A stretch of 64,000 nt of DNA from Vitrella brassicaformis CCMP3155 (GCA_001179505.1 CDMY01000344.1:47655-111654), one strand, 5' to 3'; numbered from the stretch's first letter, positions 43,646 through 60,737 are shown. A program made the numbers and translations. The notes: generated by a model from the sequence alone, not told the origin.

Positions 43646-45353
43646 ATGGCTACGAGCATCTGGCGGACGCCCGAATTCATCGACTACTATGCCGTCGACT
43701 TCTTCGGCATTCCCTCGTCCGCCGAGGGCGAAGGCGTCACGCCCTCGGCCGCCATCACCGGTCAGAAATGAGAAAAGAAAAGAACAACGGCAGCGCTCTC
43801 ATGAATCATCTCGTCTGTCTGTCTGTCAGGTGCGCTATCCTTCGGTCTTCGCATCGTGGACAAGCTCATCGCGGAGGGCCCGCAGAACACCTGGCTGCGG
43901 GAGGCCCTTGTGGCCGTCAAGTTCGCCCTCCTCCAGTGCGACGCCAACCTGGCGAAGGGCATCCCCCGCAAATACGACCCCGCCGCCATCCACAGCTTCC
44001 TCATCGATGTCGGATCGCGAGTGCGGGGCCTCGCCGCTGGCGAGTCGGTCATCCTCCCGGGCGGCGTGGCGCTCGACCTGCAGTCCAAGCCCCACTGGCT
44101 GCTGTTCATCGTCTCGAGGCCCCGTGACCGGCCCAACTACTCCTTTGCGGTGGTGAACCCTGGCGGGCTCGGTTCGGAGAACCATGCGGTGCGGCTGCTG
44201 CCGTCGCCGCCACTGGGGATCATTCAGCGGGACACACTGCTGGTGCTGGAGGGCGTGAGGGGTGAGAGGGTGGCGCACAGCTCCTTCTGGCTGCTGGTCT
44301 ACAGGCTCCTCTACAAGCCTCACGCCACCAACTTCCGCACCCTCTACAACGTCCTGCTGCCCTACCTCAATGGCAAGCCGCTGCTCTACAACTGGTTCGA
44401 CCCGCCAGATGGCAGCTGCCTTGACTCGGCCGACAGCGGGCCCGGAATGCGCGGCGCGGGGGGGCTGTGGCGGAACGAGTTCAAGGGGACGAGCACGCTC
44501 AACAGCATGGCGTCGCCGGTGGATTGCGTCATGGGGTGTGTGCTGTACTTGCTGAGGGGCCAGGGGCTGACGAGGGCCGAGGCGGCCAGCGTGGAGGTGC
44601 TTCTACACTGGGCCGTCTGCAAGGCCGTCGAGCAGGACGTCGATGCCAGTATGAAGACCAAATTCCACCGGTCCGACAAGCTACTCACAGATCTCGCCTG
44701 TCGGTAAGGGACAGCTAACAACACACATACACAAGGAGCGGACGGACCCTATCTATCCCTGTGTGTGTGTTCTGCTCTGTGTGTGTTCAGTCGGCTGGCC
44801 CAGGTGGCGTCTGACCGTGCTCTCGCTCAGGGCGAGGAGCCCAGCCGGCCGCCACCACAAGTGCACCGCCTATGGCTCACCCCCCAGCACTACCTCTCCG
44901 TCCGGCAGCTCATCGACGCCATACACACAAAGGTCAGGAGCCGGCTGCCCGCATCCCAGAACGGATACGGAGAGGGCAACTGCGCCCTCAGCCCTGCCAT
45001 CGCCGACCCCAAGTGCTCCTTTGCCGCCACGGCCACCCGGTTCCCCCTGTTTGGGAGGTTTCGGAGGGATGCGAGCGTGGAGGGCCTGGCGGGTGAGGCG
45101 CGTTCGGTGCCCTTGGTGCTGCCTGTGGAGCTGTCTGGTGTGAGTGACCGGGTGCGGAGTGTGGGCGAGGTGGGTGTGGGTCTGCGGCGGGTGGTGGAGT
45201 GCTGCACCCTGCTGGCGAACCAGAGCCAGTCGCTCAAACACACCTATTGCTGGAGATACCAGCTCATCCTGCACTTCTTTGTCCACGTGAGTGGACCACG
45301 GGAGTGGCGGGGGGAGGGAGGGAGGGAGGGAGAGATGGAAGGAGTCTTGGATC

Positions 45354-45386
<33 letters not shown>

Positions 45387-48300
45387 CTGTCATGGCTAGG
45401 TTGTGCCCCTGCCCCTGCCGCACGGCCATCCCGATCGCGCCACCAAGTGCATCTGGGCCACGTCGACACTCAGACGAGAAACACAGATCGATCTCATGAG
45501 GTAGTGCAACAAAACATGCACACCCACGGCTGGCTGGATGAATGCATCTCTCTCTCTCTCTCTCTCCGTCTTTCCAGGTTACTGCACCAGGTCTCCCGCC
45601 ATTTCCTCGCAGCCGTGTTCTCCCTCCGCAACACCCGTGGCCTGGACGCTTCGCGCATCACGGTGATGGCAGCAATCTGCTGCCTGGCCGACGCCATCTG
45701 CCGCACGCCGGCCTCCGACACGCCCAGCGCCTTCTCGCTGCACTACAGCGGCCGGGCCGAGGGGCCCGTCAAGGCCTTTGGCTTCGATATCACCTACTTT
45801 GCTGACGAGAGTGAATTCTTCCTGCTTGTCGACCCCGCCCTGAGTCTTGTGAGGTGCCAGGTAGGTCATCTAGATCTAGAGAGAGGGGGGGCGATGGCGT
45901 GTGTGATGGCCTGCCTTGCACTGGTCTGTACAGGTGTTGGATTACTTCACTGCGATATGTGACCGTTTGTCTGGTGACCATGTGGCGTATCGGTTCGAGA
46001 ACAACCTGGACCTCGGGCAGGGCGACCAAACGCTGCTCGAACAGGTCTGTCAGGTCGGCGGGTGGGGCCCCACACCGGGCAGGTGTGTGTGGATGAGTGT
46101 GTGGTTCTTTCTGCTTTGTGTGTNNNNNNNNNNNNNNNNNNNNNNNNNNNNNNNNNNNNNNNNNNNNNNNNNNNNNNNNNNNNNNNNNNNNNNNNNNNNN
46201 NNNNNNNNNNNNNNNNNNNNNNNNNNNNNNNNNNNNNNNNNNNNNNNNNNNNNNNNNNNNNNNNNNNNNNNNNNNNNNNNNNNNNNNNNNNNNNNNNNNN
46301 NNNNNNNNNNNNNNNNNNNNNNNNNNNNNNNNNNNNNNNNNNNNNNNNNNNNNNNNNNNNNNNNNNNNNNNNNNNNNNNNNNNNNNNNNNNNNNNNNNNN
46401 NNNNNNNNNNNNNNNNNNNNNNNGGGGGGGGGGGGGGGGGGGTGCACAGATATGTCTGCAAATGGGGTTCAATCGGCACCCCCAGCTGTTGCCCCTCTAC
46501 TTCTCGGGCGAACAACCAGAGGTAACCTTGGACGCAAACACACACACACCCCGGCAAATCAGTCGACGCACGTGCGTGTGTCCCTCCCTCCCTGCAGCTG
46601 ATGGATCTCTACCCCGACATGCTCTACCTCCGCGACCTCGTCTTCATGTTCAAAGTAACACAACACAACACAACACACACATCACGCAACTCACACGTCA
46701 TTCGCGCATCCCTGCGTGTCTCTCTGCCCCAGGCGCTGATGAATCCCTCCGGCGAGACCCTCCCCGAGCTCAAGCGATGGTCAGTGGCCGACGCGTCGCT
46801 CAACTGGGCCTACAACCACGCCAAGAAGACCTTCGTGGTGCGGGGGTTCGGCAAGGCCCTCGAGTGCGCCGAGTTCGTCAAGGACGACTACTACGACAAA
46901 AAAAAGAAGAAGGGCATGTTCGGCCGACTGGGGGCTTGGTTCGGCATGAAGGGCCGGGCCAGGGCGCCGCCCAGTGCGGCTGACCCAAGCAACCTCGTCC
47001 AGGGCACCAGGATCGACACTGAAGGTCGGTGAAGGGACAGGACAGGCAGAGAGGCATGGATGCGTGTGTGCGTGCGTGCGTGCGTGCGTGTGTGTGTGGT
47101 CAGATGACGTGTTGCATCTGAAGCAGCTGCCTGACTTTGAGGGGAGGCTGGGCGCGCAGGACGCGGAGCTTTTGCTGCAGTATCTCACGGCACCCTACAT
47201 CAGGTAGGTACCTACACACACGTGCATCTTGACACACATTGATGGATGGAAACACGGCCTCCTCTGTGTGTCTGCGCGTTGTGTCAGGATCCCCCTGGTG
47301 CTTCAGTTCTTCGCCGACGAGTCCAAGATCGACGCCCTCTTCTCCAAAGAGCTGCAGCAGGTCCTCAGCGCCACCCTGTTCGAGCCATCCATCTGGCAAA
47401 AGTCGTCACACAAGCCACTCCCCGGCCTCGTCCCCGCACCATCACGCGACTTCCTCGCCACCCCGCTCGGCCTGCTCTACAACGAACTCACCCACTCGCC
47501 GCGCACCGTCCTCTACGCCCTCGAGGAGCTGCTCGACATCGCCATGGACAAGGACACCGGGCGCTACACGACCCCCGCTGCGTCGATTCTGCTGTTCATC
47601 GTGCGGCTGGCCGTGCAGGTGGAGGGGTACGTGCTGTTCATCCTGCGGCACAACAAGTTCTGGGACACCCATGGCAGGGACGGGCCGTCGCCGACAGCCT
47701 CCGAGACGGACACAGGGCAGATGGCCGGGGTGGGGTGGGCGGCGAGGGTTCGGGGGCTCACCACATCCACAGACATCCTGAGCCTCCTCTCGACCGCCCA
47801 GCGGCGGGTGAGGGCACGGCTGACCGGCCCAGTGGTGCGGCTGCTGGAGGACTGGGCGGCCAAGGCCGCCCACCACTCCGACCTGCACATGGCGTGTGTG
47901 CTGTACGCCCACCTGGCCTACATCTACAAGGACACGGCAGCCGAGGAGCTCGACGCGGCGGCTGTGTCGGCGCTGCTGGTCAGCCAGGTGTTCGTCTTCA
48001 CCCACCACAACTTCAAGGCGGAGGTGAGGAGGGGCGCCGGGCTGCCGGGCTACTCGCCCCCCTCCCTCCCGGAGCAGCCCAACGCCGGAGCGGCCGCCGA
48101 GGCGGCCGCCAATCCCCAGGAGAAGACTGCAGCCGACGCCAAGGAAGACAAGGAGGCGCAGGGCGGCGACAGCCTCGGGGTGCCCGACATAGAGATGTTC
48201 TCCATCCTTCAGGCCCATCGCGTCAAGCTCCTCAGGTGGCTGCGGGCGCACCCCGAGGAGGGAGACAGGGCGATGGAGGCGGTGGTGCGGACAGTCACCT

Positions 48301-51300
48301 TCACCGGCTCGCGAGGGGTGCAGCGGGGGGCCGCAAGTGAAGGCATGTTGGCCAGGCACTGGCACGTGCCCGACGGCTACTGCTCGGAGGGGAGGTTCAT
48401 CCCCGACAGCGAGCTGGGCGAGAGCGGTGGGAGCAAGGGCTCCGATACCCTTGGCAAGAGCAGCAAAGCCGTGGCGACGTACGAGGCGTGGTTGCGTGAG
48501 GTGACGACTCAGGCGGGCGACACGGAGATCAATTTGCAGCTGGGGGAGTTTTCGCTCAAGAAGAACCCCATGGAGCTACTGGGCGAGTGGGTCAACGACT
48601 TCGATGACTTCGTGGCCCTCTTTGGGGAGGTCTCCGACACGGTGTCCTTCCAGTCGGCCGTCGTGCAAGTGACGACAAACCGGTAAGCAGCGAGTCTGCG
48701 TCTGGTCAACTGGGATGGAAACACGGCGTTGATTCGTTGCCATGTGTCGTGTGGTGCTGCAGGTATTGGTGTCGCCTGGTCGGTCGCCGGCACGACCTGC
48801 AGCGGTGGGAGCCCGACACCAGGCTGCTCACCTTCAGCTTCAAGCGGCGATACAGCCCCACGGGACTTCGGCCCGACGAGAGCTGGCTGCCGCCACTGCT
48901 GGACCCCTTCCTCGCCTTCTACTTCCCCAACCTGCCCATCTACGTCGCCGACTCGCCCGCGCCAGACTGCATCCGCCTCATGTGTGTGGTGCCCACCGTG
49001 GGCAGCGCGCCGCAGAGCTCTCCCTCGAGCGCCCCGCCACCGCCCGACACGGTCAAGGAGATCATCTGTGTGCGGGAGCCGCCGTCCATCCAGGTCTTCA
49101 ACTTCCGCGAGCACGGCCGACGGATCTATCGCGTGTTGGTCTACACGTCCGACGTGGCGCACTGTCTGCACGACTGTGCCAACAAGTTCCCGGACCCCAG
49201 TGAGGTCGGGAGCAAGGTGGCGCTGGCCAGCGGGGTGCCTGGCTTGGGGGCGGCCGCCATGGGGGCGTCTTTGGTGATATCGAGGAACCTCGCCAAGAGG
49301 GTCGGCGTGCAGACATTCATCCCGCCGGTCTACCTCAAGGTGGGAAACCGCGATGGTCCGTCAACGGTGTGTTGTGCACATACATGTTAATTGTGTGAGT
49401 GTGGTGTCTGTCAGGGTTTGATCCCCACGGCCCTTCTGGAGGAGTATGAGTTCTGGCAGAACGAGGACGACTCATTCACGGGCATTCAGCGCATCGACAA
49501 ACGCGAGAAGACCAAGACGCCGTCCGAGCTCAAGATCACCATCCACGCAAGCGGCGCACCCGAGCCATCCACCAACACCATCGGCCCCTCAGAAGCCACC
49601 GCCACTATCCAGCGATATGCCGTCAAGCTGGGCCCCTCCGGCCCATCGTCCATTGCACACGTCACCCAGATGGGCAGCGCCAGCACTGCCACTTCTGGCT
49701 GGGCCAGGAGTGCATTCGCCAACTCTCGCAGAGGGTCGGGTGACCTCAGCGCGCCTGACGCCGTCATCGGCCAGCGCGACCCGAGCGAGCCGACGTGGAC
49801 ATTGCTGAATCTGCAGTATGTGTCGGGTGACAGCCCGCTGCAGAAGCTGGTGAGCACGCTGAAGCGGCTGGACAACCTCAGCCACACGCTGGTGTGGAGC
49901 ATGAGCAAGGAGGGCGAGATCGACGGGCAGGCCGACGACATCCACACCATCGACCTCATCGAGTTGCCACGTGTCGGGCTCACCTTCCGCCCCCCGCCCT
50001 TAAAGGGCACCGCCGAGAAGGCCAAGCAGCGGCCATTCTACTGCGAGCAGCACACGGGGCTCTACATCAGCGGCCGCAACATACACGGGTCCCCCCTGAC
50101 CGCTAAGCTCCTCAAGGGCCTGCCAAACGCCATTCTGCTCGAGAATGACGACAACGACCTCTTCATTCTCGCGTCTGCGTGCTGCCGGCCGGTCCGGCTC
50201 GGCAGGGCGGCCCAGGGTGGCGGCAATGAGGGCCCTGGGCGGCAGGTGAGGGCGCTGGAGTCAGATTTCCTCATCGACTTCTCTGATCGCACGTGGTCGG
50301 CGAGTCTGGACGATGCGCGGCACTACCTCTACGCCATCCACTCGAGCCGCTCCTTCCTTTTTATCCCGACGGTTGCGTCCGCGCTGCACCTGCTGCTGAT
50401 GCGGTTCCTCGATCGCAACTATGAGGAGGTGGTCAAGCTGGCCGAGTCGGCGTGCTTCACCGACGCCCCGCCCACCAAGGAGGAGAAGCAGCTGTGGCAG
50501 CAGATCAACATGATCGGGCCAGACTCGGACCCACACCCAGACGCACACGCGTGTCGCCTCAAGATCCTGCTCGTGGCCGCTCGGCAGGGAGTGAACGTCA
50601 CCGGAGGTCAGCCTGACCACCAAAAGGCGGACGGCTTCGGTCTCACCTGGTCGCTCGCTCGGGAGCTCAAGGCGTATGTGTCCCGCTACCAATACGTGTC
50701 GGCCGCTTGCCGGCTGGCGGCGGCGGAAGAGCTGGAGCTGCTGCGTCTGTGCCCTCATGGTGACGCCACCGAGCTGACGAATCGCATTGCCCTGCTCAAG
50801 GCGGTCACGACGACCGGCGGCCGTGGGGACAACAACTCTATCGCACTGGTGGCGCCGACGCACCCCAGATATGACGACTATGACATGGTCGATGATCGCA
50901 CTTGCATGGAGAGGGAGGCCGGGGGCGTGGCGGGCAGCCTGTGGGAGTCCTTCAGCAACCTCGTGGGCACCTTGCAGTACAAGCGGCCGACCGACGAGGA
51001 GCTCTCGGGCGCGGCGGCTGTGGCCTTTGTGGAGAGGTGGCTGGAGCGTGGGGTGAGGATGGGCGACTGGCTGTACCTCTATGAGCTGCTGTGCGGGGTG
51101 CTGCCGCTCAAGCTGGTGCCGGGAGAGGAGACCTGGCCGTGGGGGGCCATACTCATTCGGATGCTCCCGCCGGGGACCTTCAAGACGCGCAGCAGACTCA
51201 TGTCCATTCTCAGGATGCTGGCCATCAATCCGAGTGTCGGACCACAGCTGCCGAGGTTCGAAGACGACCGCAAAAGTGAGCATGGCACAGCTCAGCACAG

Positions 51301-54300
51301 CGCATCACAGCACACGTCGATCTCTGTGTGTCGTTCGTGTGGTGCTATTGCAGGCAAGCTCCCTCTGGGGATCATGTTCAAGGGGTCCGAGCCCTTCCAG
51401 CGTCTGATGAAGCAGCTGCAGGCGTCCCTCAACGACATCGCCCGCTCCGACGCCATCGACTGGCCCCACCCCCCCACCACGGCCATCCCCTTTGTGCTCA
51501 ACTTCAGGATGACCGTGCCCCCGCTCGACCACCCCCACAGCCGCTGCTGGCTCAGCCCACGAGTCGACGACTACCGCTGTGGCGCCAGGACGCTCATGCC
51601 CGTTAGCGGGCCCGTCACTGCCACCCAGCAGCAGCAACAGCAGCAGCAGGGGACCAACCGGCCGCCAGACCACCCGATTCAGCTGAGCTCGGCCGACGTG
51701 TGGGCCTTCGGCAACATCCCCCTGGAGCCCATCGGGCTGAACACCTTCATCACGTCGACGAGCCGCCTGACCAGGGGCCTCCCGAGTGTGTCGAGTGAGG
51801 TGCCTTTGCGGGTGTCGCAGCACCCCTCGGCCAAGAGTGTCATGGGCGAGGCCACACTCAGGAGACTTCAGCACGAGACGCGGGCGTATGCGGAGCAGAT
51901 GAACAACGCCGCCAAGCCGGAGCTGTTGGGCTTCGCCGACAGCGACCTCACCACCGCCACACGAGACGTCGCCCACGCCCGCTCCCTTGCGCAGAAAGTG
52001 GCCACTCTGCGCGAGAACCTGCACAAGATCTTTGCGCGAGACGGGCGGTTCATCGAGGGCGGCATTCGGCTGGCACTCAACCTGGCCAACTCCACCGACC
52101 TGCCAGCCCAGGCGCCGGCCAGTGTGTCGAATCCCTTTGCCCCCCCACCGCCGCCACCACCGCCACCCACGTGAGCACCGGAACACCATCCAGACATCCC
52201 TTCTCGTGTGCATGGCGCTTGCTGTGGTGCTTGCTGTGTGTGTGTGTGTGTGTGTGTGTTGGTATAGTGAGCAGATGAAGCAGCGGCAGTGGGCGTACGA
52301 CCTGGGCAAGCTGTGTGAGCGCGAGCCGGTGCTGTCATTTGATTTCCTGGTGACCCTCCTCATGTCCAGCACCGCCGCCGCCGACCTGCAGCGACTCAAC
52401 CCCTTCCTCAGGGACCACTCCATCCAGGACCTCTTCTCGCTCGTCGCCGGCGTCATGCTCGCCGTCAACAGAAGGGCACAGGTCTCCCGGTGCCTCACTG
52501 ACGCCAAGGACCTTATCCATCTGCTCGTCGACCAACGGCCAGGAGCTCGCACAACCGGGTCGTCCGAGGCGCTCGGCAGCCAGCAATCGGCTGAGAAGCC
52601 GGTGTCCTCTGCGCGTGTGCACGCGCTCAAGATGAAGGCGGCGAGCCTTGCTGAGAATCTGGGGTCGAAGCGGCACTACACCAAGCAGGGCGAGGGGGGT
52701 GTGGTGTACGATCCCCGATTTCTGGTGTTCGAGTTCGCCTACAACATCCTGCTGCGGGAGAGCCAGGTGGTGCTTATCCAGAAGTTCATGACGGCCGTCA
52801 AGGAGGGCCGCAGTCTCTGCCACCAAATGATCATGGGCGCCGGCAAGACAACCGTCGTCGCGCCGCTGCTCGCCCTCCTCCTGGGCGATGGACAGACGTT
52901 CGTCGGGCAGGTGGTGCCGCAGGAGCTGCTCGAGTTCACGAGGGCGGTGCTGCGCGAGCGGTTCTCTGCCGTGATTCGGAAGAGCGTCTACACGTTCCGG
53001 TTCACGCGCTACATGGAGGCGACGCCGGATCTCTACCTGAAGCTGCTGCAGGCCAAGGAGACCAGGTCGGTGGTGCTGGCCAGCCCTACGTCCATCAAGT
53101 CGCTCCTGCTCAAATTTGTCGGTATGTGCACTCTACGGACCAACACAAGATGGCAGAGCAAAAGGCCGTTTGTGTGCATTGCTTATCTCGTGGTTGGTGT
53201 GTTGTGTTGTGGGGTGTGTGTGCAGAGCTGCTGCACATGCTGGACAAGGGGACGAGCCGCGCGAGGTCGCGATGGATCGCTCATGCGGCCCTGGCGGCTG
53301 CGGCGGGGCGCAAGCGAGTCAGCAGGGCGCTCAAAAGGTTGTTCGGACGCAAATCAGGTCAGCCTCTATCAGATCAGCGGCAAGTTGAACCACGAGCTGT
53401 ATGTGTGTGCAGGTCTACAGGTGGCCGAGGAGGCCCTGCAGGGCGGGGCGACAGTGGTGCCCCTCGACGACGTCGGGCAGCTGACCGTCCGGAAGGAGAT
53501 GGACCTCTGCCTGCGGATCCTCCAGCTCTTCCAGAGCGGCGTGCTGCTCATCGACGAGGTCGACCTCATCCTACACCCACTCAGGAGCGAGCTGCACTGG
53601 CCCGTCGGTGCCAAGCAGCCCCTGGATTTCACCCGACCCATAGCGACTGAGAAGGGCAAAGACCCAGGGGGCGGTGGTAGTGCTGGTGGGCCTGAGACAG
53701 AGGAGGGTCTGAGGTGGCAGCTGCCGTGGCACCTGCTGGACGCTGTATTCTACTACCAGACGGGCAGCATGAGCGTGCCATTCACCGACTCGCGAGAGGC
53801 CAAGACCATCCTCGACAAGATCAGGGAGGTGCTGAGGGAAGGGGTCAGGACCAACGCCTTCCAGTCCACCCCGCACCTGGTGCTGCTCAATCTCGCCTTC
53901 TACCATGCCAACCTGAAGCCGCTGCTCGCCCGGTGGGTTTTCCTTTTCCTGCGTGCGCGTCGCTTCCACGGGATGAGCGACGACAAGGCCCTCACATACA
54001 TCACTTTGCCGAGCGATGTGGGGCCGGTGACGGTGGGCGGCGGGAATGCTGGCGGGGGCGGGGTCGGGGGCAACATGCTCTACAACGAGATCTTTGACGG
54101 GGTGGACCGGCTCACCGACGTCAACATCAAGATGCTCAACCTGGCCAGGGAGTGGCTCAACGCCTTCGCACCACACGTCATGCAGAAGGTCAATCGTGTC
54201 AGGTGAGCCATCCACCGAGTGAGTCGGTCAGCCAGCCAGGACTCTCCCTTGTGGGCTGGGCGTGGCGTGCATTCATGCATGCAGCTTCGGTGTGATGACC

Positions 54301-57300
54301 CCAGAGGAGCTGGCCAAGCAGATGCGGCTCAACCCCGTGATGCCCCGAACGCGGCACCTGCTGGCCGTGCCCTTCGTCGGCAAGGACGCCCCCTCGCTGG
54401 CGAGTGAGTTCTCACACCCAGACGTGGTCATCGGGCTCACCATCCTGGCATACCGATACCAGGGCATGCGCGTTGCCGACTTCAAACAGGTGGGTAGGTG
54501 GGTACACCACACACAGACGGACGGACAGGCAAACCGCCCTGGGAAATCCATCTGCGCGTCTGAGTGTGTGTCGTTCAGGTGATGATGGAGCAGATGGACC
54601 GCATGGACGCCGAGTACGGCCCATTCGCGCAGCGGTCTGCGTGTCAGGAGTTCGTCACATGGGTGGAGGCCTCGGGCGGCAGGGTGCGTGGCGTGAAGCG
54701 GCGGCGGATTCACCGTGACTACTGGGGCGACTGGGAGCGCACCAAGGGCTCCCAGATGTCGCTAGTCGAGGAGATCCGATCGCCCTCTCCCCTTCCTGCC
54801 GTCATGGGGACGGCTGGGGGTGTGGGAGTGGGTGGTTCTGCCGACGTTAACACCATGGACGAAGAGGAGGAGGAAGACGCCTACCTCTTTCTGAGGATAT
54901 GGCCACTGGAGCTGGTGGACCTGTACGACCACGACCAGGAGAGGGTGCTCTTCAAGCTGCTGTGGCGGCAGCCATTAGTCATTCAGGTGCACCTCTTTCG
55001 GTGGGTCTTCCCCATCACACTCGAGCACACGGCCGTCCAGCTGTCCGCGTCAGGGCAGGAGCTCGGCGGCCAGCTGCTCTTCCCCATTCGGCTGGGCTTC
55101 AGTGGCACACCGTCGGAGCTGCTGCCTCTGGAGCTGGGCCAGTGCCACTACGAGGCCGGCACCGACGGCAAGATGCTCTACTTCCTCACATCCATGGAGG
55201 TCATGTCCATGGAGCTGCTCGACCAGGGGTGGACAGTCACCTCAATCCTCGACCGCATCGCCCTCGCTGACCCGCCCTTCCACGCCCTCATCGACACGGG
55301 GGCCCACATCACGGGGCTGACCAATCTCGAGGTGGCGCATTACTTGCTGGACAAGGGGCTGCGGGGGTTTGAGGGGGTGGTCTTCTTGGACCGGGAGGAT
55401 CGACAGATGGTGCTCGTGCGGGAGGGGTGGCGCGTCATGCGCCTGGCGCAGTGCGGCATCAGCGCAGCCAGGAGATTCACCTTCTACGACCAAGTGTAAG
55501 CACACCTGCACAGCACACACTCAGTCAGAGACAAGACTCCTTTTGAGTGTATGTGATGTGGCGGCCTCGCCTGTTGTCAGTCACACGACAGGGCAGGACA
55601 TCAAGCAGGCCATCTCTGCCTGTGCGGTGCTCACCGTCGGTAAAGACATGGTCTTCCGCGACTACGCCCAGGGCGCCTTCCGAATGCGCGGCATCGGCAA
55701 CGGGCAAACCATCCGCCTTTTCATCCCGCCAGAGGTGGCCGACCTCATCCGATACACAACCAAGAAGGCCGGCGCCCCCTCCTCCGTCTTCGAGCGGCTC
55801 CTCAGCCGTGCGGACGCCTCTGCAGCACCACCAGCCACAGCCATGCCCTCGCTCCTGTCCTCCGACACACTCGGGGGCAGCGGCGAGCTGGGCACCGCCT
55901 TGCGAGAGGTGTGTGGCTGGCTGGTGGTGCGGGGCATCGAGTCCGAGCAGCTGCAGTATCGGCTGCTGAGCGCACAGAACCTCTCCAACGTCTGGAGGAA
56001 GCGCGCCTTCAGCCACCTGATCTACGCGCACTCGCAGGTCGGCTCCAACGAGTGCCCGCCCATCGTGCGGCAGTCGGTGGAGCTCTGGCGTGACCAGCTC
56101 CACTACGCCGTGCCCAACATGGTCCCCGTCATCCAGACGCAGTCGCAGAAGCTTCGCGAGAGCGCCAACGAGCACCAGGCCCTCTTGTCAGAGCAGAAGG
56201 ACCAGGAGCTGGTGCATCGGATTCTGCAGAGTGCGGCTGACCGTGAGGCGCGGGAGCGGCAGGCTGTCAAGGGCGGGGCGGGGGCGGGTGGTGGGGGGCT
56301 GATTGGTCTGACTGGCAGTGAGGAGCGGGAGTTCCTGGAGGCGGAGATTGAGCAGGAGCAGGAGCAAGAACAGGAGGAGGAGCAGGTCAGTCAAGTCAGG
56401 ATGACATAAGCCGTCTATTCTTGGCTGGCTTGTGTTGGTGTCTTAATTGTGTCAACTCTTTCTCTGTCTGGTGCATGTCTGTGTCTGTCTTTGTGTGGTG
56501 TGGCGTTCAGGAGATGGAGCAAGACCAGGAGCGTGAGCAGGTGGGTAAGACATGATGGATGGATCAGTCACATCACCTACACATCACCCTACCCCGTGTG
56601 ATGTGACCAGTCTGTATCGCTGTCTCCGTGCTGTCTGTGTGCCTGGTTCGATTCAGGAGCAGGAGAAGGAAGAGGAGAAGATGCCCGAGCCAGAAGAGGC
56701 AGCCAAACTCAAATACTCCAGACAGGTCAGCTAGACAGACCGTTACACACATACGCCACGCAGCCACACCTCTGTGTGTGATGTGATGTTGTCTTCTCCC
56801 TTCACACACCACACCACACATACAGGACGAGGCGCCTTTGCCGTGGCCGATTGAGTCCCTCAAGGACGCACCATCCAAGCAGCAGCAGGCATTCTACCCT
56901 CTCTCTGAATTCGCCGTGCTCAAGGTCACAACACACCGCCACATCGCACCACAATCCCTCACTCACGCTCACACACTTTCCCTCCCTCCCTCCTTGCTGT
57001 GGTGTGCTGCGCATGATTGCAGAAGATGATAGCGCGTCCGCGGCCGATAGCCTTCCCCGAGTACCTGTACCTGAGCAACAACCACTACAAGGCGGGCTGG
57101 TCATGGAACACCTTCAGGCGCCTCAAGAACGTCATTGTCGTCATGGAGTGGATACCCGACTGGTCAGACCTCAACCTACGCGGAAAGGCCAAAAACACTG
57201 TAAGTGAGTCGGCAGCACACCACACCACACCACAGCACAGCACAGCACACCCAACAACCATACACATGGATGGATGGAAGGTCTGTCACATGATCACATG

Positions 57301-60300
57301 ATGGATGGTGTCGCCTCGTGATGGCATGGCAGAGCGCCCCCCCTCCCGGCCTGTCGCCCGAGCAGACGCAGCGTCTCAAGAAGGCGTTCGACCTTTTCGA
57401 CACCAACAAGCGGGGCACCATCTCCCTCGCAGCCTTCCGCGAGCTGCTCCGCGCCATTGACGCCGACGCGACCGACACGGACGACCCCACCGCCACCCAC
57501 ATGCTGCACAAACTGGTGGAGAGGCACAAGGGGCCGCGGCCGCCGGGCCCATCCAGTGGTGCGATGAAGCTCAAGGGCATCCTCAACCCCGCCCCAGCAG
57601 TGCCGTCACCGCGGCTGATCGGATCACCGCAGCCAGGCCAGGGTCTCCCCACCACCACCCCCGCACATGACCCCATGGACCTGCTGGGCGGCTTCACGGC
57701 ACCCCCACCCGTATCTGCACTCCCACCTACGGCAGCCATGGCGACGTCGCCACCTCCTGCTGCTGGTGGGGGTGGTGAGAATCGGCCGGTGTCGCGGTCG
57801 CCCTCCCCGCCTGGCGATGGGTGGGGGCTGGATGCACTGGATGACCTCCTGGGCGGGCCCAGCCCCACGACCAACGGGCCGATGGCGCCATCCCCCACCT
57901 CCCCTCCCCCTCTGGTGTCATCACCGCCATCCGCCGCCCCTGTCCCCGCCCCCACTCCCGCCCCCCTGACCAACGGCCCGGCCATGGCGTCCCGCTTTGA
58001 TGCTCTCAGCAACCTGGGGGCAGTGGACGTCGGCCACTCGGCCAAGGACAAAGACAAAGACAGGGATTCTCGGGAGAGGGAGAGGGAGAGGGAGAGGGAG
58101 GGCGTTTTGACCGAGGCTGACCTGCGGATCGAGCTGTCGTTTGAGGAGGTGCGGGAGGCGCTGGGCGAGGAGTCGCTGTACGCCATCCAGAGGGGCAGGT
58201 TCTTCGTCGTCCTCGCACTCGACGAGGCCGAGACCGTCAGGGCCGCCATGCACGTCAGACAGGTGGGTGACACGACACTCAGAAAGAACGGTGGGATCAA
58301 GGGCATGTCTCCCTCCGCCCTGTTGTGTCAGGCTCAGCGCGGCCCGTCGGTTGTTCCCGGTGCCCACTCAGCGATTGCTCTCCGCAACCTGTCCTCCCGC
58401 TTCGCTCCCCTCGACGCCTCACCACCCTTCTTCGACACTGCCGATGGCAACGGAGCCCTCGGGGCGCCATCGCTGTCCAGGGGGCTGAGGGCGGCATCCT
58501 ACCAGCAGGAGAGCGCCCACAGCTGCTGTCGCTTCCTCAACAGCGAGCTGCACTACTCTGACCGGCAGGTGGCGCTGTTAGTGCGGGCCCTGCAGCCCAA
58601 TTCGTGTGACGAGAGACAGGTCGGTCCGTGGGATCGGTGGGCGTTGGTTCGCTCGTGTGTCATCTATGTGTCTATGCCGTGCGTCTTTTCCTTACACAGG
58701 AGTATTTCTTTGACGTGCGAAAGTGCCGTCGACGACGTCAGATACCCTGGCAGGGCACCCCTATAGCGAGGCTCTTCACCACGCCCGACGACTACGCCCT
58801 CCTGCAGTTCAGGGCAGTCGCCACCAAAGTGCGATCGGCATGCGTCAAACGGTCAGTCAGTCGTCACAATACACACAACACAACACAACACACCAGGTGA
58901 GGTGCATGGACATTGATTCATTCGGTCTGTGTGTTGTGATGTGATCGGTCGCCTCCACTGCAGTGGGTTGTCGCTGGTAGATGCCTTCCGTGCATTCGAC
59001 CGGGACCGTGACGGCATCCTCAAGCCGGCAGAGGTCTACGCCGGCCTTAAGTGGCTCGGTGTGGACATCGCACCTAACGAAATGCAGGTAGGTCTGTCCC
59101 TTCAGCTGCCTCTCCCTCCCTCCCTCCCTCCTTGACCCACACACACCATGACCATCTATCCCCTCTCCCTGGCGTGTCTGTCTCGGTGTCAGGACATCCT
59201 CCGTCACATCGACATGGACGGCAACGGCATCGTGACGGAGCACGACTTCACGGTAGCCCTCGCAGACCCATTCAAGCAGACCCAGCAGGGCGCCGCTGGC
59301 CGTGCCGCGGCCGTCAGCGGGCGGGACAAGCTGTCGGGTGCCGAGGACAGTGACGAGGACGAAGGGTTTGGCGCATTCCCCACAGAGGGGCTGCCCTCCA
59401 TACCATCAGGTCAACCACACACAAGCACCATCACAGACGGACCACCCATCATTACCATCCTTGTCTGTCTGTTCGCCTGGTGTGCAGAGAGTGACCTGAG
59501 CCGCTACACGTCCGAGTGGAACCGTGCTGGCGGGTCGGGGCCCAACCTGATGGCGCCCGCCCTCCTCCGCCGCCTCAAGGTCAAGCTGCAGCCCCACACG
59601 CAGTTCCAACTGATCTGGGCGACGGAGCCATCCCAGGCCGTCCACCAGATGCCGGTGTCCATCTGGGCGCCCGACGGGCTGGAGGGGAAGCGGTCTACGC
59701 TGCGGAGGAACAGGGTGCGGATCTGTTTGGGGCACTATGTCATCGAGGGGTATGACATGCAGACCGTCGCCAATGCGGCTGCAGGGGCTGGGAGCCAAGG
59801 AGTGGCGCGGGTGAGGGAGGGAGGGAGAGAGGGAGGGAGAGAGGCGGATACAGATGGATGGCTGACACTCCTCTCGTGTGTGATTGTTTGTGTATATGTC
59901 TGTATAATTGTGTGTGTGTATGTGTGTGTGTGTGTGTGTGTGTTTGTTGTCCACCCACTCCCCAGGATCCTGTGGGTCCGATGGTGTTTGAGTTCACGGA
60001 CACGGGTGTGTCTGGGCTGGCCGAGAGCCCCATCCTCAAGCCACTAGTCGACACACTCCTGCCCCTGCCCGTCAGGTTCAGACAGGTATGTCGGTATCCA
60101 TCCTCACACACATGCTGCGCTGCAGGGCAGGGCAGGGCAGGGCCACCACACCAATCCTGTCAAGCAATGCAATCATGCCATGCCCTCCTCTGCCTCTCCT
60201 GCCTGCCTTGTGTCCATCAATGTCTGTCAGGTTGGCACGGATGCGTCTGGGCGCGCCCCCCTGCACCTGTGGTCGCCCGTGCCGCCCACCAATGACTACG

Positions 60301-60737
60301 TCGCCCTCGGCCTCATCGCCACCACGGGCGACTCCACCCCTCCCCCCCTCACCGCCATCCGCTGCATCCCACGCAAGTGGACCGCACCCTCGCCCGTGCC
60401 GCCCAGGAAACTCGCAGACCTCCACACATCAGGCGGCGGCAAGGTCACGTCGACGGCCAAGGGCGCCCTCTCCATCTGGGCCGTCACCTCCATGCAGCTG
60501 CTCGCGGCGGTGCCTGGCGGCTCGCTGCCACGGGAGAGGGGCGGGGAGGCCTTCGTGGAGCTCAAGTACAATAAGTTCGGCATCGAGCCGGACCGGCTGG
60601 GCTTCCGGGTATCGGGGGACTTGTTGTCTGGGGGCGATGAGCAGCGGGGCGACGGCGACAAGGAGATCCCCAGGATAATGAAGAGGGGCGCGAGCAAGGC
60701 CGGTTCCACTATGTCGGGCATACTGGGGCTCAAGTGA
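43646..60737 (+). CDS. Giant (~4,500 aa, ~30 exons) DUF3638/DUF3645 SF2-like P-loop NTPase with EF-hands and C-terminal Vps62/DUF946-like repeats
   Basis: Continuous spliceable exons from ATG 43646 (MATSIWRTPEF) to TGA 60737. QMIMGAGKTTV (52824-52856), LLIDEVDLILHPLRSEL (~53553), LAVPFVGKDAPSLASEFSHPDV (DUF3645, ~54358), LGFSGTPS (~55095), ALIDTGAHITG, FYDQ|..HTTGQDIKQ, EQEQEQEQEEE, EF pair DRDRDGILKPAE/DMDGNGIVTEHD (~58998-59250), LWSPVPPTNDYVALGLIA..AIRCIP (~60270-60370). Confidence 0.88.
46124..46423. other. Assembly gap (300 N) inside an intron of the giant gene
   Basis: Run of n flanked by GT-rich sequence and poly-G. Confidence 0.99.

Follow-up and report, generated by a model that had tools for sequence, protein, structure and literature searches.

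Among described systems, those closest to the gene considered here are the Legionella effectors AnkH, AnkD and LegA15, the two-lobed motors of the SF2/SecA type and the domains named Vps62 in plant proteins. AnkH contains a clan-CE-type cysteine-protease-like domain with the triad H243-D258-C324 and the motifs rGHa, D/NRg and GNCSWANV (PMC6712400), and the domains that Pfam calls Vps62 in plant VPS13M1/M2 are predicted by AlphaFold to form beta-tripods (PMC7613979). For proteins with the paired domains DUF3638 and DUF3645, a 2025 paper stated that the mechanism is undefined. Here we analyse a 64,000-nucleotide stretch of DNA from the chromerid alga Vitrella brassicaformis CCMP3155 (CDMY01000344.1:47655-111654; hereafter the window), in which positions 43646-60737 of the plus strand hold a spliced gene for a DUF3638/DUF3645 protein of ~4,500 residues. 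Its best overall explanation, to which we assign a probability of about 0.6, is a Ca2+-responsive, ATP-driven giant with a Cys-less head and a probable ubiquitin-type ancestry; the domain map is well supported, and the mechanism is inferred.

The extent of the gene follows that of its relatives in other protists, several of which align with it from end to end (tblastn with the proteins P0170, P0029, P0003, P0165 and P0190 as queries). The Chromera velia protein P0170 (5,238 residues) is collinear with the Vitrella gene from its residue 9, placed at 43658, to its C-terminal residue, placed at 60734, the relatives from Babesia duncani and B. bovis (Babesia proteins have ~4,400 residues) align from residue 4 at 43658, and those of Cryptosporidium (~5,230 residues), Toxoplasma, Entosiphon and metagenomic protists are also collinear throughout. 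Across an assembly gap near the 5' end, P0170 continues in three segments (residues 756-803 at 45910-46050, 801-826 at 46450-46521 and 825-943 at 46595-47023) without the loss of any residue, and the exons flanking the gap are both in phase 0, so that a gap of unspecified length cannot shift the reading frame. As judged from sequence and alignment, 43646-60737 is a single real gene and the gap is intronic. An earlier note on this stretch had proposed one ~17-kb gene with a ~4,500-residue product, with which both the collinear relatives and our 28-exon model of 13,503 nucleotides agree. A run of ~19 G at 46424-46442 abuts the gap and is probably a hard-to-sequence stretch that broke the assembly.

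The window is GC-rich eukaryotic DNA with introns, and the frame of highest coding potential changes often between 43646 and 60737 on the plus strand. Exons were modelled by a splice-graph search restricted to GT-AG introns, then by a homology-weighted rerun and finally by inspection of ambiguous junctions by hand; one homology-weighted model of 4,795 residues ran through in-frame introns and was dropped in favour of the hand-corrected chain. The resulting 28 exons (27 introns) have consistent phases throughout and no in-frame stops. The product length is the sum of the exon coordinates, and searches and the head fold were run on single exons or on intronless homologues. The parts of the gene are as follows.

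43646-43760, plus strand: exon 1 with the start codon (ATG at 43646); position 43658 matches residue 9 of P0170 and residue 4 in the Babesia proteins P0029 and P0165
43830-44703, plus strand: exon 2, the AnkH/LegA15-type head, from a fold model and hhalign
44791-45286, 45400-45500, 45578-45860 and 45934-46053, plus strand: exons 3-6, conserved N-terminal region, from tblastn with many relatives and checked phases
46124-46423, no strand: assembly gap (Ns) within intron 6 (46054-46449), with phase-0 exons on either side
46450-46521, plus strand: exon 7, a 72-nucleotide mini-exon just 3' of the gap, 61% identical to residues 801-826 of P0170 and 61% to residues 750-777 of P0192
46598-47024, 47104-47203, 47288-48682 and 48763-49339, plus strand: exons 8-11, conserved in the family, no Pfam match
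49415-51275 and 51354-52123, plus strand: exons 12-13, conserved middle region, no match in Pfam or to PDB sequences
52272-53121 and 53326-54202, plus strand: exons 14-15, DUF3638 and first RecA-like lobe (Pfam PF12340, E 2.4e-22)
54285-54489, plus strand: exon 16, DUF3645 (Pfam PF12359, E 5.1e-17), with the motif AVPFVGKDAPS at 54364-54396
54579-55495 and 55581-56385, plus strand: exons 17-18, second RecA-like lobe, from motif conservation and the homologue fold model
56657-56725, 56826-56924, 57023-57199, 57333-57604, 58010-58619 and 58700-58806, plus strand: exons 19-24, linker with low-complexity stretches and a degenerate EF-hand
58964-59250, plus strand: EF-hand pair, split by an intron (Pfam EF-hand_6, EF-hand_8 and EF-hand_1)
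59535-60737, plus strand: exons 26-28, Vps62-type tail, from tblastn to orthologues; stop codon at 60735-60737

The centre of the protein carries the hallmarks of a nucleotide-driven motor. DUF3638 (PF12340) scored 79.8 bits against a Pfam cut-off of 31 in the range 51903-54203, and DUF3645 (PF12359), downstream of it, scored 61.4 bits against a cut-off of 25 in the range 54223-54579. Across 45 aligned giants, the motifs QMIMGxGKTTV, DExD..LHPL.SEL, GFSGTPS, LIDTGA, FYDQ.H.TG.D and RD..QG..RMRG are invariant or nearly so, Walker A and Walker B without exception, and all are present in Vitrella, together with a Q-motif-like Gln ~20 residues upstream of Walker A. An acidic EQ repeat, which the earlier note had described, was located just after them.

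52833-52850, plus strand: Walker A, MGAGKT
53547-53564, plus strand: Walker B, LIDEVD
55095-55109, plus strand: GFSGT
55287-55304, plus strand: LIDTGA
55482-55493 and 55582-55605, plus strand: FYDQ and HTTGQDIK, separated by an intron
55657-55692, plus strand: motif VI-like RDYAQGAFRMRG (QGAFRMRG)
56350-56373, plus strand: acidic EQ repeat

The fold of this module was modelled on a 946-residue segment of the intronless homologue L003, with the five Vitrella exons as alignment rows (predicted local distance difference test (pLDDT) 69, predicted template modelling score (pTM) 0.45). All of the best 50 matches in a structural search were two-RecA motors of the SF2/SecA type (Z 10.1-12.4), spanning both lobes (residues ~19-865) and including SecA, DinG, DEAD-box, Hel308, SNF2 and RIG-I-like proteins; Foldseek placed LGP2 and MDA5 first (E ~1.5e-3). 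Sequence and profile searches with the motor lobes against PDB sequences returned no helicase and nothing significant. Like the SF2/SecA motors, the Vitrella module has two RecA-like lobes with Walker A GxGKT and Walker B DExD, as well as an SGT motif III-like, a TGxD motif V-like and a QxxxRxR motif VI-like element with the predicted arginine finger of lobe 2; it differs in having large helical insertions, including DUF3645, between the lobes, and in showing no significant sequence match to solved helicases. These comparisons support a two-lobed SF2-type motor, predicted from the homologue model, in which the motifs for nucleotide binding and hydrolysis are all intact, as the earlier note's reading of an SF2-like NTPase in the DUF3638/DUF3645 region had it.

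At the N terminus, the closest structural neighbours are bacterial effectors. An AlphaFold2 model of exon 2 (290 residues) built with 13 homologous segments reached pLDDT 78 and pTM 0.76, and a structural search with it returned AnkH (6mca; Z 14.4, 217 residues aligned, root-mean-square deviation 3.7), AnkD (7ew8; Z 13.8, 221 aligned) and LegA15 (7kj6, Z 13.6, 222 aligned; 7xql, Z 12.6, 226 aligned), well ahead of the next unrelated chain (Z 6.2, 110 aligned), of RavZ (Z ~4, 163-178 aligned) and of the NEDD8 protease Den1 (Z 2.7, 146 aligned). Profile-profile comparison (hhalign) of the giants' N-domain with the AnkH family, represented by Legionellales and Coxiellaceae genes picked by the GNCSWANV pattern, gave 91% probability (P 9.4e-7, 124 columns) and paired GGHAIM with the catalytic GHAITF and V.NTG with K.DRG; with an alignment that included the Vitrella head, P was 1.1e-4. 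For the head alignment we took sub-ranges of intronless homologue loci, since MAFFT runs that combined the short exon with full-length giants scattered the exon ends. A HMMER sequence and profile search of the head against PDB sequences gave no significant match, and a word search with the N-domain alignment found no short fragments. Fold and profile comparison together support homology of the family head with the AnkH/AnkD/LegA15 effector domain: a common fold over ~220 residues (Z 12.6-14.4) and catalytic positions in the same order within similar motifs (GH(A), N/D-x-G and G-N/T-C). The settings differ, the effectors being proteins of ~460 residues with ankyrin repeats, whereas in Vitrella the domain stands at the front of an ATPase of 4,500 residues and has Ser in place of Cys; in the giants, unlike the effectors, a 'YH...FW' insertion also separates the Asn motif from the Cys motif. 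His88 and Asn109 of Vitrella occupy the places of the catalytic His, which opens a strand, and of the Asp or Asn that closes the next one. The positions that matter in the head are these.

44093-44095, plus strand: codon of His88, aligned to AnkH GHA
44156-44158, plus strand: codon of Asn109, aligned to AnkH DRG
44183-44185, plus strand: codon of His118 of the conserved 'YH' motif
44513-44515, plus strand: codon of Ser228 at the nucleophile position, from the profile alignment

The nucleophilic Cys of the GNC motif, which belongs at the N terminus of the following helix, is absent from the Vitrella head, where the position falls on Ser228 or, alternatively, on Ser221 or Thr222, and no alignment gives Cys; the alveolate orthologues also lack Cys there. 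A subset of the giants carries W-R-T-P-Q-R-A-G-T/N-C-Y-F downstream, and P0221 and P0059 are examples of paralogues with Cys. In the family as a whole, Cys occupies the nucleophile column in 14 of the 96 members, 13 of which also have the His and the Asn, while the triad His is present in just 29 of the 96; this co-occurrence supports a His-Asn-Cys triad, short of proof, related sequences being apt to share states. Vitrella keeps the triad His88, which its Toxoplasma, Cryptosporidium and Babesia relatives lack. With Ser at the Cys position, the Vitrella head is unlikely to act as a thiol protease; it most likely lacks catalytic activity, or is at best a serine variant. The earlier suggestion of a papain-like head thus holds for its cysteine-protease-like character and fails for the papain (clan CA) order of Cys before His, since family members have His first, then Asn and then Cys, as do clan CE and AnkH. 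Genes of the AnkH type, with the invariant GH...GNCSWANV pattern, abound among Legionellales and Coxiellaceae, in genomes as well as in metagenome-assembled genomes (MAGs), at no fewer than 120 loci, and 86 of the loci listed have full-length open reading frames of ~465-580 residues; a few matches to the pattern in unrelated phyla may be due to chance.

Between head and motor lie ~2,300 residues that are conserved and have no recognisable fold. The N-terminal and middle exons had no Pfam match, the middle region had no significant match to PDB sequences, and the corresponding regions of the relatives likewise lack Pfam domains; a language-model search gave weak leads to propeller-plus-solenoid proteins (Med16, Nup133 and HPS6, score 0.84).

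Downstream of the motor, Pfam identified three EF-hand matches, which we compared with the canonical 12-residue loop, in which positions 1, 3 and 5 provide acidic or polar ligands, position 6 is Gly and position 12 is Glu or Asp. The first, with Arg in position 5 and Ala instead of the required Glu in position 12, is probably blind to Ca2+; the other two are canonical, in keeping with the EF-hand pair described earlier, to which the degenerate loop is an addition. The tail that follows contains repeats of the W.P..YVALG..IRC type.

57399-57434, plus strand: EF-hand loop 1, degenerate, DTNKRGTISLAA (EF-hand_6, 26.1 bits against a cut-off of 25)
58998-59033, plus strand: EF-hand loop 2, canonical, DRDRDGILKPAE
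59211-59246, plus strand: EF-hand loop 3, canonical, DMDGNGIVTEHD
59655-59678 and 60261-60371, plus strand: W.P..YVALG..IRC units of the tail
59655-59678, 60261-60311 and 60468-60485, plus strand: repeat motifs of the tail

Assignment of the tail comes from orthologues: the Babesia bovis protein P0165 and the metagenomic protein P0190 score 30.4 and 31.3 bits for Vps62 against a Pfam cut-off of 22.1, and the ranges that align with the Vitrella tail by tblastn (60204-60599 with residues 4258-4368 of P0165; 60261-60539 with residues 4455-4537 of P0190) overlap these above-threshold matches. The Vitrella tail repeats a W.P..Y..LG unit, and a beta-tripod fold is suggested here by analogy with the published predictions for the Vps62 domains of plant VPS13M1/M2. 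Of the Vps62-like tail proposed in the earlier note, then, the repeats are seen and the orthologues exceed the threshold, and the Vitrella exons themselves go unscored. The membrane-trafficking role that had been attached to it is weakly founded: its basis was the Pfam name Vps62, which has been attributed to a spurious alignment (PMC7613979), and such a name provides no evidence for vacuolar sorting or membrane trafficking.

Taken as a whole, the protein is ordinary for its kind. A phmmer search with the DUF3638 exon matched 2,697 cluster representatives at E ≤ 0.001, many of them of 3,000-7,000 residues, and a hidden Markov model of the N-domain matched ~120 giants. Full-length relatives have their parts in a common order (head, long conserved region, DUF3638, DUF3645, second lobe, EF-hands, Vps62-type tail), and this architecture recurs in Chromera, Toxoplasma, Cryptosporidium, Babesia, Theileria and many metagenomic protists. 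The order in Vitrella is that of Chromera velia A0A0G4IG68 (5,238 residues), of a Toxoplasma gondii 'EF hand domain-containing protein' (~4,365 residues) and of Babesia bovis BBOV_IV000220 (4,381 residues), and both termini align; segment identity to DUF3638/DUF3645 giants is just 25-70%. The closest relatives come from Chromera and Vitrella. Among 264 relatives fetched in a search for the gene's own product, the highest identity was 79% over a short piece and none exceeded 85%, and exon 12, in a search that yielded 29 relatives of the middle region, gave no more than 40%; the Vitrella protein P0171 is a paralogue (26-60% identical), not the product. By domain order and alignment, the Vitrella gene is an orthologue typical of a eukaryote-wide family that is catalogued but still uncharacterised. 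The earlier note was right to speak of an undescribed function, since we found no published function for any DUF3638/DUF3645 member in the searchable literature; the architecture itself is not unusual and is widespread across protists.

On the explanation that we favour, the ~4,500-residue protein would be cytosolic, and its motor would use ATP hydrolysis to remodel or translocate a macromolecule that the giant scaffold holds as substrate. Lacking its Cys, the head would serve as a recognition module for substrates rather than as a protease, the EF-hand pair would confer responsiveness to Ca2+, and the beta-tripod tail would dock the machine to a protein or membrane ligand. The tails of paralogues repeatedly carry UBA, UBA_7, AZUL, RanBP-type zinc finger, WWE, MIB/HERC2 and thioredoxin domains; because these tails are often ubiquitin-related and a minority of the family keeps His-Asn-Cys, the ancestral job was probably in ubiquitin or ubiquitin-like (Ubl) signalling, which is the least certain step. 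A more specific proposal, which we regard as possible and offer tentatively, is that the giants are unrecognised ATP-driven ubiquitin/Ubl machines whose His-Asn-Cys N-domain is the eukaryotic counterpart, and possibly the host-to-bacterium source, of the AnkH/AnkD/LegA15 domain, with the chromerid and apicomplexan head acting as a Cys-less sensor and the EF-hands as a Ca2+ gate.

Several points weigh against this explanation. The link to ubiquitin runs entirely through domains of the paralogues, and the Vitrella protein carries none of them. In vitro, protease activity was not detected for AnkH (PMC6712400), and for LegA15 an atypical GTPase activity has been reported that relies on the same Cys (PMC9757750); the alignment of Ser228 falls in a low-confidence loop region, and a Ser there could still be catalytic. 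For the motor, the fold comes from the homologue L003, which is 41-58% identical to the Vitrella exons and was modelled with moderate confidence, and the best matches, which include several SF2 subgroups and motors for protein as well as for nucleic acid, tie within 1 Z. The Vitrella tail exons alone gave no match to Pfam Vps62 (PF06101) even at E ≤ 10. Exon borders 3' of ~56385 are heuristic and the least certain in the model, exon 19 has no homology support, and we found no transcript or annotated product of the Vitrella gene, so that the splice model is computational.

The alternatives differ in which of these parts they put to work. The likeliest alternative, though still an unlikely one, is an SF2 helicase or translocase whose motor depends on nucleic acid, for example one that senses or remodels RNA in the manner of RIG-I/Dicer or DEAD-box proteins, with the other domains as regulators: LGP2 and MDA5 head the Foldseek results, DEAD-box, DinG, Hel308, SNF2 and RIG-I-like helicases score Z 10-12, and the Gln upstream of Walker A resembles a Q motif. 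However, the protein-translocating SecA is equal to these or slightly ahead (Z 12.4 and 12.2), no nucleic-acid-binding domain occurs in the window or in the 120 relatives listed, and profile searches against PDB sequences returned no helicase. Less probable again, in our judgement, is an active deubiquitinase or Ubl protease, whose head would cleave ubiquitin or Ubl conjugates while the motor feeds it substrates. UniProt does name relatives 'ubiquitinyl hydrolase 1', but this name is automatic and no supporting paper was found in the searchable literature; the fold is clan-CE-like, with Den1 and RavZ as distant neighbours, yet no protease activity has been demonstrated for the closest relatives of solved structure; and the full triad in 13 of the 96 family members, like the UBA, AZUL, WWE and MIB/HERC2 domains of paralogues, has to be set against Ser in place of Cys in Vitrella and the absence of Cys in its alveolate orthologues. 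A related idea, a viral-tegument-like deubiquitinase (VTD), was dropped, the VTD paper being silent on ATPase or P-loop giants and on the DUF names.

Far less credible than either is a span made up of two or more genes, or of a chimera joined by eye across the gap. The gap at 46124-46423 is real, transcripts were not found and several C-terminal exon borders are uncertain; against this, the parts occur in identical order in single proteins of at least six lineages, the Chromera orthologue reaches both termini and crosses the gap intact, and a phase-consistent, stop-free splice chain exists. Several of the relatives are encoded by intronless genes, and the one-gene architecture is for this reason not an annotation artefact.

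The DUF3638/DUF3645 family itself is already catalogued; what is new here is that the family head is homologous to the effector domain of AnkH/LegA15 and that the triad is degenerate in the lineage of Vitrella. The family is large, and its members, which occur in the majority of the eukaryotic supergroups sampled and in parasites (Toxoplasma, Cryptosporidium, Babesia and Theileria), rank among the largest proteins of their genomes. Three testable handles on it are gained: the SF2-type motor is intact, the head shares homology with a Legionella effector domain for which it is disputed whether the activity is that of a protease or a GTPase, and the tails are swappable and often ubiquitin-related. 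The AnkH/LegA15 link could be informative for both partners: on the host side about the role of the giant proteins, and on the bacterial side about the object of effector mimicry in protists.

Some smaller observations concern other loci and the introns. A second DUF3638 locus lies on another contig of the Vitrella genome (G000:C257:89377-89622) and is perhaps that of the paralogue P0171 (4,331 residues). One family member of 3,315 residues (P0226) carries the label of an Anaerolineaceae MAG and is probably encoded on a eukaryotic contig binned with a bacterium. At two metagenomic loci (L005:12885-13188 and L010:1-325), small neighbouring open reading frames overlap the giant gene at its ends; a RanBP-type zinc finger is present in one of them and Thioredoxin_8 in the other, and they may be parts of the same giant protein split off by gene calling. 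Within the Vitrella gene, (TG)n/(CA)n microsatellites lie in introns (~45340-45380, 52230-52265 and 59890-59950), read as 'CVCVCV' in open frames and inflate the number of spurious open reading frames in this GC-rich stretch.

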